Shown here piece after piece: positions 1 through 5,239 of a stretch of DNA of 64,000 nucleotides. A model generated the notes under the pieces. The model saw only the letters and a program-made list of their open reading frames with translations. It was not told where the DNA came from and did not search any database. Each line of letters begins with the position of its first letter. The first letter of the stretch is position 1. The DNA is taken from the NCBI GenBank assembly GCA_977020255.1, contig CDROCS010000985.1, forward strand, positions 1 through 64,000. Direction: 5' to 3'. Source of the DNA: Obrimoposthia wandeli. Lineage: Eukaryota. Made by a program: the position numbers and the translations under genes.

Positions 1-17
1 GGGAATTTAAAATCATG

Positions 18-53
18 ATAGACGGAATGATTCCGTCTATTAAGCTGTTAGAA
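18..53 (+). other. Hairpin plus GTTAGAA core: right part of a cassette recombination site opening cassette 1
   Basis: Perfect 10-bp stem ATAGACGGAA-tga-TTCCGTCTAT (18-40), then GTTAGAA (47-53), the exact reverse complement of TTCTAAC (603-609) at the end of the same gene. Confidence 0.6.
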
Positions 54-68
54 TTGAAGGAGTATAAA

Positions 69-608
69 TTGAACAAGTGTTTAACAAAGGCCGCACTAAT
101 TTTATTAGGAGGGATATCTTTATCTCTTAACGCTGAGGAACAAGCTGTTAATTCAGCCGATCTCTTAGTTGGGGCGGGTGTATTTACTATTGGTAACTCA
201 AATTGCTCAGGTTGCGATTATTCTGGTGAATTTATTGATCTTGGTTACGAATTGAATGATTTCGTAGATATCGAAGCTAAATATTCAAAAGGTGATGATG
301 ATTATAACTTTGATATTACCACTACTTATTTGGGCGCAAATATAGGATATGATTTTGATACAAAATGGTTGAAATTGTATGGGAAAGTTGGTGTTGAAAA
401 AGTTAAACAAGTTATAGGGGTTAGCTGTGGTTTTGAGTGTAACGACATCTCCCATTCTGAGTCAAAATTTGTTTATGGTGTTGGTGCTCGATTTAAGTTA
501 TCAGAAGTTGCCTCTGGGGTTTATATCGATGTTGAGGCCCAATCAATAGAACTATATAGAAAAAAATCATCGACAGTCTTATTTTTAGGTTTAGGTTATC
601 AATTCTAA
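69..608 (+). CDS. Outer-membrane beta-barrel (OmpA-like/porin family) protein, integron cassette gene
   Basis: AAGGAG RBS at 57-62 and in-frame TTG at 69 (ORF track starts at 15). Signal peptide, alternating beta-strand pattern, C-terminal LGLGYQF with terminal Phe. Stop codon overlaps the attC R'' box. Confidence 0.75.
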   Translation: MNKCLTKAALILLGGISLSLNAEEQAVNSADLLVGAGVFTIGNSNCSGCDYSGEFIDLGYELNDFVDIEAKYSKGDDDYNFDITTTYLGANIGYDFDTKWLKLYGKVGVEKVKQVIGVSCGFECNDISHSESKFVYGVGARFKLSEVASGVYIDVEAQSIELYRKKSSTVLFLGLGYQF

Positions 609-680
609 CTAGGCATTCAAACGGACAATTTACAGTTGGTTGTTCGCTTCGCTCAATTATAACCAACTGCAAATAGCCGC
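603..680 (+). mobile_element. attC site, truncated at the L' box
   Basis: TTCTAAC-taggc-ATTCAAAC-ggac; inner stem TTTACAGTTGGTT (629-641) / AACCAACTGCAAA (661-673) pairs 12/13. Ends at GCCGC where the L'/R' arm should follow. Confidence 0.75.
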
Positions 681-800
681 AATTCACAGGACACCCTTCT
701 TAAAATACTATTAAAAATCATCGGCGCTGCTCTACTTTTATTAAGATTGAACTCTTCCTATTGGTGTAGTGATATTTTATTTAAAGTGGGTGTCTAAGTT
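681..800. repeat. REP/REPIN-like inverted doublet (GGACACCC ... GGGTGTC)
   Basis: GGACACCC at 689-696 and GGGTGTC at 788-794, inverted with a ~90-bp spacer, starting exactly where the attC breaks off. Confidence 0.4.
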
Positions 801-880
801 AAATCTAAGTTAAACCATTTTTGATTGTTAAAAGAAAATAATCCAGTTAGAGTATTTTTATTAAAAATTATATAAAAAAC

Positions 881-898
881 GAGTAATTCTACAGGCTC
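881..898. mobile_element. Isolated MITE/IS terminal inverted repeat abutting a cassette GTT core
   Basis: GAGTAATTCTACAGGCTC; its reverse complement matches the left end of the 1424-1600 element at 16/18 nt. AATTCTACAGGCTCGTTA is identical at 885-902 and 1587-1604. Confidence 0.65.
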
Positions 899-919
899 GT
901 TAAGTGAAAAGGAGGTCCG

Positions 920-1356
920 GTGACAACTGAAAAGCTAATATTTGCACTTGAAATAGATGACGGTTGGCCGCCAATTAGTGCAGAAGGTATTTGGTGTGAA
1001 AAGGTTGATGATAACTATAAATTACTCAACACACCTTTTTTTATACCAGACTTAGCTTGTGGTGATATCTTCAAGGCTATTCCTGACCCTATAAATAAAA
1101 ACATTTTTGAATTCGATGTTATCGAAGAGTCTGGGAATTCAGTGATATGGGTGATGAATAACAATGACCTTGATATCCAGTCTTTCACAGAAACGCTGCA
1201 AAAAATAGGTTGTGAGTTTGAAGGTTTCCCTCGATATTCATTATTATCGGTCGACGTACCTAGCACCGTTGATATCGTAGTTTTAGAGGAACTACTTGAT
1301 TTATTCGAGGAGTCAGTTTGATTTTTGCGTACCCTGTCTGGAGGTTTGGTGAATAA
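920..1356 (+). pseudogene. DUF4265-like protein, cassette gene with apparent 1-bp frameshift near the 3' end
   Basis: GGAGG RBS, GTG start after GTTAAGT (899-905). Frame stops at 1321, but one extra G at ~1317 would read through ...ESGLIFAYPVWRFGE* to TAA 1354-1356, just before the attC. Family call from recalled motifs. Confidence 0.6.
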
Positions 1357-1360
1357 TTTC

Positions 1361-1423
1361 ACCATACAAGTCATTCAAAAGAACAAAAAAAAGTTTGCTG
1401 TTTTTTGTCCTTAATGAGGCGTT
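1361..1423 (+). mobile_element. Short attC site
   Basis: ACCATAC-aagtc-ATTCAAAAGAACAAAAAA ... TTTTTTGTCC-TTAATGAGGC-GTT: imperfect dyad with degenerate R'', ending in the GTT core. Confidence 0.65.
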
Positions 1424-1600
1424 GAGGCTGGAGAATTACTCCAAAGTAGAAAATTGTGGATGACTTTTGTGTTCATACAGCCCGTAAAACTCACATTATA
1501 GTGGAATATTCCCTCAGATTTTACGTAGCATCGTAATTTGAGGCTTAATTTTTAATAAATTATGAGGTTGTTTTTTCTAAAATAGAAATTCTACAGGCTC
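1424..1600. mobile_element. 177-bp non-autonomous element (MITE) inserted in the attC GTT core
   Basis: Ends GAGGCTGGAGAATT (1424-1437) and AATTCTACAGGCTC (1587-1600) are inverted repeats (12/14). Flanked by GTT at 1421-1423 and 1601-1603. No long ORF. Confidence 0.75.
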
Positions 1601-1623
1601 GTTAGCTTATTCAAGGAAGTCCT

Positions 1624-2082
1624 ATGCATCGCATTATAATTTTAACCTTATCTGTTCTTTTTTCTTGTGCCGTAATAGCTGATACAGCTATTGATAGTAA
1701 AAATATAAAACGAGCTGTACTAGATTACATAGAGTCGCAACACAAAGTCGAACCAGAACTAATGAAAAGGGGTTTAGATAAAAAGTTAGCTAAAAGAACT
1801 TACTGGGAATCTAAGGACGGCTCAGAGATTATAATGGAGACCAATTTTGAAACGATGGTGTGGGTGGCTGAAAACTACAACAAAGATGGTAATAAATTCC
1901 CGTCATCTCCCAAAGTTGATGTCAACATACTCGATATTGATAATCGAGTTGCATCGGTAAAATTAACAGTGGATGATTGGATCGATTACATGCATTTATA
2001 TAAAAATGAAAATAACGAATGGAAAATAATTAACGTTTTGTGGCAATACCATGATACGAAAAAACATTCGAGTAAACCGTAA
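1624..2082 (+). CDS. Secreted NTF2-like (putative lumazine-binding family) protein, cassette gene
   Basis: Signal peptide; C-terminal ASVKL...DYMHLYK...WKIINVLW pattern. Cassette opens GTTAGCT (1601-1607) and closes AGCTAAC (2082-2088), exact complements. Confidence 0.75.
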   Translation: MHRIIILTLSVLFSCAVIADTAIDSKNIKRAVLDYIESQHKVEPELMKRGLDKKLAKRTYWESKDGSEIIMETNFETMVWVAENYNKDGNKFPSSPKVDVNILDIDNRVASVKLTVDDWIDYMHLYKNENNEWKIINVLWQYHDTKKHSSKP

Positions 2083-2149
2083 GCTAACAAGGCAATTAAG
2101 CGGAACTAAACAACTTAACTATGCCACCCATCAAGTTATCATGGGTGGC
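2082..2149 (+). mobile_element. attC left arm truncated by a GCCACCCAT/ATGGGTGGC hairpin
   Basis: AGCTAAC-aaggc-AATTAAGC-ggaac, then a 9-bp stem at 2123-2131/2141-2149. No matching right arm or GTT core. Confidence 0.55.
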
Positions 2150-2187
2150 CTGATAAAAATTTGATAAAAATTGCAAGTGGCTTATAA

Positions 2188-2532
2188 ATGAAAAAATGGA
2201 TGGCTTCACCTCAGAAAGTGAAAATTACAAAGTCGATGAAAGACTCTGTAAGCGAAGAAGGGAGTACTCTAATAGATAATGTGCTTAAGCCTCTTTTCAT
2301 AAAACCAGAAGAAGAGAATTACTGCTCTAATCAGGTTTTTGATATCGAATTAAAGTGGCGAGGAAATTCACTATATCTTTTGGCTAAATATAATTGTTTA
2401 GGTGAAAATGCAATATCACCTACATTTGAAAGTAAGTTTGCAAAATTAGTATTTGTGGGCAACGATAAGTTCAATTTGTCCTATATGCGTCATAATGATA
2501 ATGGTGTAATTATGATAGTCGATTTGATTTAA
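2188..2532 (+). CDS. Hypothetical protein (DUF3024-like), possibly C-terminally disrupted
   Basis: 114-aa ORF with KWRG..Y and F.LSYMRH motifs. Family call from memory. Confidence 0.5.
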   Translation: MKKWMASPQKVKITKSMKDSVSEEGSTLIDNVLKPLFIKPEEENYCSNQVFDIELKWRGNSLYLLAKYNCLGENAISPTFESKFAKLVFVGNDKFNLSYMRHNDNGVIMIVDLI

Positions 2533-2592
2533 ATGCAGATATTAGTGTTGATTGTTCAACCATAGTTTTAATAGGTAACGCTTACATGGTTG

Positions 2593-2612
2593 GTATAACA
2601 AAACAGTTAGAC
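2593..2612 (+). other. Tyrosine-recombinase simple-site-like dyad (attI-like)
   Basis: GTATAAC-aaaaca-GTTAGAC: 6/7 inverted match with a 6-bp spacer; the right box fits GTTRRRY. Confidence 0.35.
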
Positions 2613-2640
2613 ATGTTTGTCGCTCCACACATTATAGCCA

Positions 2641-2846
2641 ACTTATGTGGACTCCCCCTTGTCAACAACAAAAATAATAACACAAAGAAATAAATGCGTA
2701 CTTATGTACGAGCTCTAAAATGAGAAGCTATCTCTGGCTCTTTGATATTTACGCGAACTCGTTGTCAAATCTGTTAAGCGAGCGCTAAGCTCTCTGTTGG
2801 CTACTGACTAAACGAGCTGATTTTTATCTTCGTTAGCACGGACAAA
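2641..2846 (-). mobile_element. IS1111-like (IS110 family) non-coding right end, candidate bridge/seek RNA; transposase absent
   Basis: Minus strand ends TTGACAAGGGGGAGTCCACATAAGT (subterminal-IR-like motif with a -35 hexamer). Internal 8-mers match the element end (2700-2707 = 2641-2648) and the flank (2796-2803 = reverse complement of 2635-2642). Confidence 0.5.
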
Positions 2847-3167
2847 GGGGTCAGGTCTTTCTTTTTTCACTCATTCATTATTGCTAATATTTAGTTATTA
2901 ATTTGCCAAATTTGATCGGTGAAAGGGGTGCTAGGCCGTTAAGGTCAGATTTCGCAGGTGCTTTATATCATGTTAGATCACGAGAGAATGAACGAAAGCT
3001 AATTTAGTAAGGTCGTGATAAAAAGCAAGAGCTGTCCTCTTTTACTTTTAGAAAGCCTATGACTAAACCGACAAATTAAACCCTAGATTAAGCTAGCCTC
3101 GACTGTGTAAAATTTATTACTAATTTTTCAATCAAGCCACTGAACCATTATCTAGCTTAGTTTAACT

Positions 3168-3199
3168 TAGCGCTTAAGTCGCAAGCCGATTAAGCGCTA
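3168..3199. terminator. Hairpin downstream of mnmC
   Basis: TAGCGCTTAA ... TTAAGCGCTA, 10-bp stem. Confidence 0.45.
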
Positions 3200-3221
3200 T
3201 TACACCAACACTCTCGCAGAA

Positions 3222-5239
3222 CTAATCAAACTTACGGCGAATAATGTCACGAATAACAAAACGATTAGGGGCAAGATTAAACAGTTGCTCGTTGTCTAAC
3301 GGGTAGGGCATACCGCAAATATCTGCCGTTAAAATATCGGCAAGTAAGGGGGCAGTGCAAAGTCCTCGCGCCCCTAATCCTGTCATCATGTAAAGGTTGT
3401 TAATCACTGGCGCTGGCTGGTCATAACGCCAACGTTTGTCTTTGCTCAGGTGTTGATATTGTACTTTGTGCGCGTCAATATCTGGCATAGCACCTACCAT
3501 TGGCAAGTGATCAGGTGTCATGCAACGCAAGCGCGCTTTACTACTCACCACATCACTGATTTTCCATTGGGTTAAACCTGGTAAGCATTTATCTAACATA
3601 GCAAGGTTAAACTCATCTTCTGCAGTCTTGCTGTCGATATCAACGCTATTTTTTTTGAAGGTTGCACCGATACAGTGAAGGTTGTTACTTGCTGGCGTTA
3701 AATAGCCCTTGTGGCAAATAACCGTTGCCAGTTTTGCTATTTCGCCATGGCTGGCCATATTGCTGACTTGTCCGCGTACCGGCGTTAATGGCATTTGGTC
3801 AATCACATTTAACGCAATGCCTTGCGCACCGCCACAATATATAACGACGTTGGCAGGAATATTTTCAGTATCACTGTGTAGTAGCCACTTTCCTGTTGGT
3901 TGTTGGCTAATACTATTGATTTTACAGCCAGTTTCTATACGCAGGCGATTACTTGATTCCGCCGCCTTAAATATCGCTTTAACCAATTGTGGCGGGGCTA
4001 TCCATCCGGCTTTTGGAAAAAAAAGACCACCATGATTTAGCGTAATGCCCGCTAAACTACTGGCTTGATCTTTATCAATGCTATGCAATAAATTTTCTGG
4101 CCAAATACTAGAGTCAGCGATGTGTTGTTGGCGTAACTCTAGCGCGGGCTTGTAGGATATTTCTAATAAGCCACACCAGTCATGATCATAGTGATGACCT
4201 TGCTCGCTGATGTTTTTATAAAAGCTAAGCGCTTGCTCGAATGCTCGTTGGTAAAACAGACTAATATCATCAGCCTGTTGATGAATAAGTGGGTACAAAG
4301 CGCCAATGTTGTTGCTTGATGCACCTTGCGCGACACTGAAGTCTTGACAGTAAACGGTGACTTTAACGCCACTTTTTGTCAATGCATAAGCGGCACATGC
4401 TGATGCGATGCCACCGCCAATAATGCTGACATGTTGGGGCTTAGCAATAAGAGGACGTTGTTGGTAGCCTTTGCCTGAAAGTGGGTTTTGTTGAAATACC
4501 GCGGTTAACATTTCATTTTTTTTGCCGTCAGTACTTCGCTTTTCAACACGAAAGCCTGCCGCGACTAATTGCCGCTTAACTTTACCTGATACGGTAAAGG
4601 TTGAAAGTGTAGCTTGCTCTTTTGACAAGCGAGAAATTTGCTTAAATAGTGCTTCGTGCCACATGTCAGGATTTTTAGCTGGCGAAAAGCCGTCAAGAAA
4701 CCAAGCGTCGACCATTGCCGCATGCTTATTTTGCTTAAAAGAATGTTGCGAGGACTTTGCTGGTGCAAGTGTTGCTAAACCTTGTGTGGCATCGTCAAAT
4801 ATTAATGTTAAGGTTACTGCACCGCTAAGAGCAGCACGCGAGCTTTAAAAGTAAAGTCAGCGATAAGCTGCTGACTAAATGGCGCAAGCTGCGGTAATAT
4901 TGCTAAAGATTGTGCAAGTTGCGCTCTTGATAGTGGGTACTTTTCTACACTGATAAAGTGCAAGGCGCTGACCGATGCAAAATGCTGCTGGTTTTTATTG
5001 TGTCGTATTTGATCAAATATTTGTAAGGTGAGCAAAAAGTTTAGCCCAGTACCAAAGCCGGTCTCAGCGATAACAAAGTTTTCTTGGCTTTTGGCTAAGC
5101 GAGCTCTAATATTATTACCGTTAATAAAGACATTTTCACTTTGGCTAGTACCTTCGCTGGTATCAAAGTAGATGTCACCGAATTGGCTTGAATAGGGTGA
5201 ACCATCATTTTGAAAGGTAATCTTTGCTTGTTCAATCAC
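3222..5239 (-). pseudogene. mnmC: Bifunctional tRNA mnm5s2U34 methyltransferase/FAD-dependent oxidoreductase, split by a frameshift at ~4815-4850
   Basis: N part (4814-5239) has FGDIYF and ETGFGTGLNF; C part has [15 protein letters not shown] and GLGARG. The C-part frame extends upstream of its first Met (...[14 protein letters not shown]...). Divergent from fabB as in enterobacteria. May be a sequencing error. Confidence 0.9.

Follow-up and report, generated by a model that had tools for sequence, protein, structure and literature searches.

In the papers searched for this study, only the IS1111-attC elements and the group IIC introns are named as invaders of attC sites. The transposase of the IS1111-attC elements, which are insertion sequences (ISs), is guided by a seekRNA or bridge RNA, and their insertion is not known to create a target duplication. 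According to the passages of PMC3971601 and PMC12444791 that cite Tetu and Holmes (2008) and Post and Hall (2009), this group belongs to the IS110 family and includes ISPa21, ISPst6, ISKpn4, and others; PMC11187229 attributes to it a DEDD transposase, a seekRNA, and subterminal repeats. Group IIC-attC introns are retroelements featuring a ribozyme and a reverse transcriptase, and outward promoters have been documented for them (PMC3001079). IS1272, a member of the IS1182 family, reportedly replaces unrelated stem-loops, with no target duplication (PMC5678879), and palindrome targeting in this family was described by Siguier et al. (2015), as cited in a passage of PMC5678879. Furthermore, MITEs (miniature inverted-repeat transposable elements) are associated with integrons, comprising integron mobilization units and the MITEs of 439 bp that border class 1 integrons in Acinetobacter (PMC3575428). 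The present study deals with a 177-bp MITE located at positions 1424-1600 of the window, i.e., of the whole stretch of 64,000 nucleotides analyzed, which represents the first 64 kb of contig C985 (CDROCS010000985.1) of the Obrimoposthia wandeli assembly GCA_977020255.1. This assembly comprises 1.35 Gb in 6912 contigs, a size indicative of a eukaryote, with bacterial contigs included, and the analysis was confined to the bacterial contigs; the window features between 604 and 2130 described below lie on the plus strand. With high confidence, the MITE is regarded as a non-autonomous derivative of an IS lineage of the IS1182 family, inserting only at the GTT of the attC R' box, in one orientation and with a 3-bp duplication.

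The MITE and its parent IS resemble the IS1111-attC group in their attC-specific insertion in a single orientation, but differ by a DDE transposase of the IS1182 type, terminal 14-bp repeats, the 3-bp GTT duplication, the use of the R' crossover triplet, and the occurrence of a MITE derivative. Membership in the IS1111-attC group was ruled out, since the transposase is of the DDE and not the DEDD type, the repeats are terminal, and a duplication is present. As in the case of group IIC-attC introns, attC sites are invaded specifically and co-oriented with the cassettes; unlike for these introns, no intron RNA match, no reverse transcriptase, and no promoter were found here. A group IIC-attC intron was likewise ruled out, with no Rfam match in window positions 1-3200 and no open reading frame (ORF) for a reverse transcriptase. 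IS1272 shares the transposase family and the inverted-repeat or stem-loop target, whereas the insertions described here leave the attC palindrome intact, hit a fixed triplet at its 3' foot, are accompanied by a 3-bp duplication, and are directed to one functional class of sites. Known integron-associated MITEs flank whole integrons or groups of cassettes, mobilizing them as composite units, and are not known to reside inside attC sites at the crossover point. The element studied here is, like them, a short non-autonomous inverted-repeat element found with integrons, but it sits inside attC, at the crossover triplet. Full-text literature searches combining IS1182 with attC or integron returned nothing relevant, an attC preference of the IS1182 family being undescribed there, and integron papers from 2024-2025 cited the IS1111 group alone for attC targeting. 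An earlier annotation made from the letters of the window alone, hereafter the sequence-only reading, had proposed an attC parasite distinct from both IS1111-attC elements and group IIC introns, and the IS1182-family DDE partner together with the GTT duplication bears this out. The element would be a third kind of attC-specific invader, with a different transposase family and footprint; a prior description in ISfinder is possible.

In agreement with the sequence-only reading, the MITE lacks any ORF longer than 27 amino acids and is bounded by 14-bp inverted ends (GAGGCTGGAGAATT and AATTCTACAGGCTC) that are complementary at 12 of 14 positions. GTT flanks it on either side, the left copy of the target triplet being located at 1421-1423 and the right copy of the duplicated GTT at 1601-1603. 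Its left end (1424-1445) agrees with the left end of the parent IS in 20 of 22 nucleotides and its right end (1583-1600) with the right end of the IS in approximately 17 nucleotides, while the interior of about 135 nucleotides is unrelated to the IS sequence. A repeat search also paired 881-898 with 1424-1441 (18-nucleotide arms, 89%), and the 18-base identity noticed earlier across both junctions was confirmed (885-902 equals 1587-1604). The interpretation then given to 881-898, namely a second end of the same MITE, was not retained; the segment instead belongs to the truncated right end of the parent IS (818-901, 92%). Within the window, the end motif (≤3 mismatches) occurs three times versus 1.43 expected, and 16 out of 100 shuffled sequences reach three; hence, the motif in the window alone is not beyond chance, and it is the copies throughout the assembly that settle the reality of the element. 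Folding of the MITE is more stable than that of shuffled sequences (z of -2.8 and -3.2), the fold consisting chiefly of the terminal repeats pairing with each other. No Rfam family was found for the MITE (window positions 1-3200, E-values up to 1), apart from one chance snoRNA match. In summary of its class assignment, the element is short and non-coding, shares terminal inverted repeats with an IS, occurs in dispersed copies, and is flanked by a target-site duplication.

The parent element was recognized on C253, a 4.68-Mb bacterial contig of the assembly, where one MITE copy is preceded by the right end of a larger element, a single GTT separating the two. This IS (C253:3011670-3013551) is approximately 1.89 kb long, encodes a DDE transposase of 510 amino acids, and possesses the ends GAGGCTGTAGAATT. 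Three full copies are present on C253, all of them arranged as attC...GGCGTT, IS, GTT, and next cassette, and all in one orientation, so that an autonomous element with the ends of the MITE, as anticipated from the sequence-only reading, does exist. In two of these copies (b and c) the 14-bp inverted ends are perfect (14/14), and sizes of IS copies range from 1.79 to 1.90 kb. Members of the IS1182 family are generally about 1.3-2 kb long and carry terminal inverted repeats. The transposase contains the domains PF13751 (1.1e-30), PF05598 (DUF772, N-terminal, 2.8e-14), and PF01609 (4.6e-07), and the NCBIfam model for IS1182, NF033551, was by far the best family, scoring 267.6 bits over residues 32-505, just under the cut-off of 270, followed by IS5 with 36.6 bits. 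Orthologues are labelled by NCBI as 'IS1182 family transposase' or merely as 'transposase', with no named ISfinder element among the labels. The early guess that the termini are of the IS1182/IS5 type was therefore right, in view of the NF033551 score, the three Pfam domains, and the names of the orthologues.

The GTT triplets at either side represent a true 3-bp target-site duplication, as indicated by four lines of evidence. Two pairs of near-identical attC sites were found in which the empty member possesses a single GTT (...GGCGTT followed by the next cassette) and the filled member GTT on both sides of the element. In Colwellia sp. C2M11, one copy (L086) is flanked by ATT on either side. 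Transposases of a sister clade, 36-41% identical and with similar ends, are associated with GCT/GCT, TGC/TGC, or GCA/GCA flanks, indicating that the 3-bp duplication is a trait of the wider group and that the triplet varies by lineage. In the maximum-likelihood tree, a clade of 33 rows (SH-like approximate likelihood ratio test, SH-aLRT, of 100) comprises only copies of the GTT type and copies for which flanks were unavailable. The proposal of a GTT duplication at the attC crossover point was thus upheld by the empty and filled attC pairs, the ATT/ATT copy, and the sister-clade triplets. As an observation on the sister clade itself (L149, L164, and L172 in G580; L152 and L165 in G497; L136 in G207; L151 and L154), its elements feature ends of the type GAG(G/C/A)CTGTCGAAAAAGG, and the target with GCT/GCT flanks reads ...CTGCT/AT; these lineages seem to have fixed targets of their own, which are not attC sites.

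To a large extent, the insertion rule can be read from the MITE copies of the same assembly. At least 17 copies or fragments were found on nine contigs, with 79-95% identity and a well-conserved interior, always located 5' of a cassette ORF and co-oriented with it. When these copies are aligned together with their flanks, conservation stops at the left GTT and extends a few bases beyond the right GTT (GTTA), the latter being expected of an R' box. Among the intact left junctions, 11 out of 13 are preceded by an attC-like ...G(C/T)GTT, and GTT follows at the right junction in 15 out of 17 copies. The MITE was also detected in 6 of the 201 sampled genomes of the family, in the arrangement attC...GTT, MITE, GTTA. 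No match to it was obtained in five genomes harboring close IS relatives, which indicates a narrower distribution for this family of MITEs than for the lineage of the IS. On contig C5179 (positions 1-5204; loci L004, L005, L008, and L012), six MITE copies follow each other at a spacing of approximately 800 bp, that is, at nearly every cassette junction, one of the copies being internally deleted and another lacking its first 37 nucleotides.

The IS lineage itself is more widespread. In a scan covering one genome per species, related transposases were found at 78 loci from at least ten named genera, namely Colwellia, Cognaticolwellia, Pseudocolwellia, Thalassotalea, Psychromonas, Pseudoalteromonas, Psychrobium, Psychrosphaera, Marinomonas, and Alteromonas. 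For 39 full IS copies the flanks were readable, and the left flank was an attC-like ...GCGTT or ...GTGTT in 35 of these, representing at least eight of the genera; the right flank was mostly GTTA, and the transposase gene always pointed away from attC. More distant members with 41-50% identity, originating from several Desulfobacterota genomes and one metagenome-assembled genome of Proteobacteria, have kept the end motif GAG(G/C)CTGT(A/C)GAA and the GTT/GTT flanks, and the copy in Desulfamplus adjoins a textbook attC with GTT paired to AAC. When all fetched DNA was pooled, 79 distinct sites were obtained (50 of IS size and 29 of MITE size), from hosts among the Gammaproteobacteria and Desulfobacterota with transposase identities ranging from 41% to 96%. 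The flanks of these copies are not random, given that 70 of the 79 distinct insertions are bounded by GTT/GTT behind an attC-like 3' end, with the consensus GGC-GTT, element, GTT-A. Plasmid relatives in PLSDB were restricted to three records of 0.67-1.3 Mb (two Pseudoalteromonas and one Catenovulum). In metagenome contigs from four public runs (marine, estuary, and seawater), the IS end and the MITE were covered far more deeply than their flanks and had many different neighbors, and the contigs break at these repeats. Tandem arrangements also occur (IS-GTT-MITE, IS-GTT-element, and MITE-GTT-MITE), owing to the right junction (...CTC GTT A), which can be hit again. At one tandem IS-GTT-MITE junction (L020:6400-6430), a 14-bp palindrome is followed by a T-run, a combination that received a terminator-like score on the antisense strand relative to the cassettes.

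With regard to the nature of the target, the integron context is found repeatedly. An intact integron integrase gene is present on C253 (3527248-3528195; TIGR02249, 469.6 bits with a cut-off of 265), at a distance of 11 kb from the pair formed by IS copy a and the neighboring MITE, a decayed intI lies near IS copy b (C253:3018453-3019194), and a partial intI was found on C3765 at a distance of 2.4 kb from two MITE copies. Across the assembly, intI genes above the family cut-off occur on four contigs (C5466, C2866, C666, and C253), the gene on C2866 containing an in-frame TAG stop, which indicates that several integron-bearing bacteria or replicons are represented. In other genomes, more attC-like 3' ends on the same strand and at cassette spacing surround many of the IS copies. 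An attC site is an imperfect palindrome of approximately 50-140 nucleotides that is closed by AAC/GTT, with an unpaired spacer and bulged bases on one of its arms. For structural analysis, pre-insertion sites were rebuilt by joining the left flank to the sequence past the second GTT. In 9 out of 19 rebuilt empty sites, one of them from Desulfobacterota, the canonical attC fold was obtained, with GTT paired to AAC, a span of 80-105 nucleotides, a 3-nucleotide unpaired spacer, and single bulges on the 5' arm. In the palindrome test, in which an upstream inverted partner was scored for the 38 nucleotides ending at the insertion point and compared with 1000 control GTT positions, 34 of 68 sites exceeded the 99th percentile of the controls (median score of 14 versus 7.5). 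The filter for empty attC sites intended for a covariance model yielded only five sites. Both a palindromic fold and a co-oriented array with intI were thus found for the target, which supports its identity as attC; recombination of these sites by IntI would be expected.

Several results weigh against the interpretation of the MITE as a derivative of an attC-specific IS1182-type lineage, or at least against its certainty. The score of the transposase with NF033551 stays just under the family cut-off, as given above. In the attC filled by the MITE of the window, R'' is degenerate (ATACAAG) and GTT remains unpaired in the minimum-energy fold. Across sites, minimum-energy attC scoring with forced AAC/GTT pairing did not discriminate insertion sites from control GTT positions, and an arm-alignment score requiring an exact AAC discriminated only partly (29 of 73 sites above the 95th percentile of the controls). 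Movement of cassettes by IntI would recreate the left junction without transposition, and the 79 sites are consequently not all necessarily independent. Finally, no empty-site joint for this locus was present in the contigs of the public runs, and no transposition event was observed.

Against this background, it was considered whether the 177-bp unit might itself be an ORF-less cassette, or part of a long composite attC, moved by IntI with cleavage between G and TT, the GTTs being crossover sites. Such an origin would account for both junctions being the IntI crossover triplet and for units located at cassette spacing on C5179, and abutted ends of a circular form would yield a palindrome around GTT. 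However, the unit does not possess an attC itself, its 3' GTT has no internal AAC box as a pairing partner, and at the left end GTT-GAGG is read in place of the required AAC, for which reason identity with an ORF-less cassette was rejected. Moreover, the ends belong to a DDE transposon of the same genome, and the sister-clade relatives flanked by GCT, TGC, or GCA as well as the ATT/ATT copy are difficult to reconcile with IntI crossover, leaving this origin very improbable indeed. It is similarly very unlikely that the MITE/IS pair has no true attC specificity and reads a short core such as CGTTA, insertions elsewhere having been removed by selection. Only about seven bases (GGC-GTT-A) are conserved across all sites, tandems arise where an element has inserted beside the right end of a copy already present (...CTC GTT), and insertions in cassette arrays are known to be tolerated (Cury et al. 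2016, PMC4889954), all of which would fit a short core. Yet, by our own arithmetic, a genome of 4.7 Mb is expected to contain a core of 5-7 bp in hundreds to thousands of places, whereas all three full IS copies of this assembly and nearly all of the 39 elsewhere are located, with a single orientation, at the ends of attC sites; the complementary R'' side was not seen to be occupied by any copy, and inverted-repeat partners are strongly enriched at the sites.

That the repeat serves the host as a regulatory or structural module of the array (a promoter, a terminator, or a small RNA), maintained through selection and multiplied by homologous recombination, is close to negligible in probability. 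The conserved interior, the stable fold, and the constant position upstream of a co-oriented cassette ORF may be explained in this way, but neither an Rfam family nor a sigma-70-like promoter was found, and the fold reflects mainly the pairing of the terminal repeats. Sharp boundaries, inverted ends shared with an IS, and a 3-bp duplication are, by contrast, hallmarks of a transposon. A secondary benefit of the MITE for the host may exist beside its transposon origin.

Taking the transposon interpretation as a basis, the following mechanism can be proposed. The MITE has kept approximately 20 nucleotides of either IS end and would be moved in trans by the IS transposase, as suggested by the ends common to MITE and IS. 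The sole place of insertion is the GTT in the R' box with which attC terminates on its 3' side, i.e., the crossover triplet of the integron integrase, where the DDE transposase would introduce 3-bp staggered cuts. The left end of the IS abuts attC, with the transposase gene pointing in the same direction as the cassettes; this orientation specificity implies a different reading of the target on each of its two sides. Recognition most likely depends on the attC palindrome, or on a folded strand, in combination with the GGCGTTA core, an assumption that is favored here without being firm. It builds on the observation that only about seven bases are conserved while the rest of attC varies by host, and on the analogy with IS1182 relatives reported to select stem-loops.

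The consequences for the integron are less certain. After insertion, attC is probably still usable by IntI, since GTT-GAG still fits GTTRRR, and in this case the next cassette would carry the element along at its 5' end. The sequence-only reading had envisaged both a recombinogenic attC and travel of the MITE with the next cassette; these suggestions did not gain support beyond two anecdotal cases, in which homologous downstream cassettes in different genomes are preceded by the IS in one and by the MITE in the other, with differing upstream neighbors. Its further suggestion that the MITE supplies the next cassette with a promoter was not confirmed, as three consensus scans detected no outward sigma-70-like site, either in the MITE or in the IS right end. 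A conserved TAAAAT was visible by eye during this search, without a -35 box. As a tentative and rather doubtful extension, a DDE lineage spread over more than one phylum may have specialized on the R' triplet as the one invariant feature of attC, leaving attC recombinogenic, so that IS and MITE would act as 5' leaders exported by IntI with the integron as their vehicle for horizontal spread, and MITEs could fill arrays completely and give rise to rearrangements.

Integron cassette arrays constitute a major reservoir of genes for adaptation and resistance, with the attC sites as the only joints at which they move. For annotation, it is of relevance that the elements place 0.18-1.9 kb between an attC and the cassette following it, and that assemblies are broken by them. 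With respect to the dynamics of arrays, the repeats that they supply can serve for deletion and inversion, and composite cassettes may arise; the MITE is able to occupy most junctions of an array segment. Furthermore, a natural system becomes available for studying how a DDE transposase reads a structured but sequence-poor site. Among cold-marine Gammaproteobacteria the lineage is common, and it is present in Desulfobacterota; no immediate clinical link was seen, given that plasmid relatives were confined to the three large PLSDB records.

In the window itself, positions 1-2700 represent the distal end of an integron-type cassette array, consisting of small co-oriented ORFs between attC-like imperfect palindromes. 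Their products are an outer-membrane beta-barrel protein, a DUF4265 protein, a lumazine-binding-like protein, and a DUF3024 protein; ordinary chromosomal genes (mnmC and fabB) are located beyond the array. The first cassette ORF (15-608) encodes the outer-membrane beta-barrel protein (PF13505), and its attC (604-680) starts with the R'' box TCTAAC at 604-609 and extends to the L' arm at 657-680, the last approximately 13 nucleotides and the GTT being missing. This attC contains an inverted repeat (628-641/661-674) and shows the TATAACCAAC...GCCGC pattern found in other attC sites. Downstream of it, the last approximately 81 nucleotides of an IS are kept at 818-898, including its terminal inverted repeat at 885-898; segment 818-901 is 92% identical to the last 83 bases of the IS query (1815-1897 of 1897, flanking GTT included). 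Judged by this similarity, it is the stump of a full IS that formerly occupied the previous attC, an attC likewise lacking its 3' end. The approximately 130 nucleotides between the truncated attC and the stump (685-817) have no similarity to the IS, and their sole other match in the assembly is a weak one of 61 nucleotides on contig C1760.

The GTT following the IS remnant (899-901) opens the DUF4265 cassette, whose ORF is located at 920-1321 (PF14085). Its attC, the one filled by the MITE, is short (1364-1423) and ends in ...GAGGC GTT; besides the degenerate R'' mentioned above, it features an L''/L' stem at 1371-1417, and this hairpin is clear in the fold of the reconstructed empty site and in the alignment with other filled attC sites. 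On the other side of the MITE, the right GTT together with 1604-1608 forms GTTAGCTT, the exact complement of AAGCTAAC (2081-2088), which represents R'' in the attC belonging to the downstream cassette; this complementarity identifies position 1601 as the original cassette boundary. The downstream cassette ORF (1624-2082) encodes a lumazine-binding-like protein of 152 amino acids (PF12893), and only the 5' part (R''/L'') of its attC is present at 2081-2130, the 3' half being missing. This partial attC-like sequence and a further one at 2590-2670, corresponding to an L' half of the TATAGCCAAC type, mark a decayed distal end of the array before mnmC. Solo right-end remnants of the IS similar to the stump in the window, with lengths of approximately 60-190 nucleotides, were also found on other assembly contigs (L028, L029, L030, L025, L026, and L032). 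At least six solo right ends are directly followed by GTT and mostly by an ORF soon after, so retention of the right end beside cassettes seems to be recurrent.
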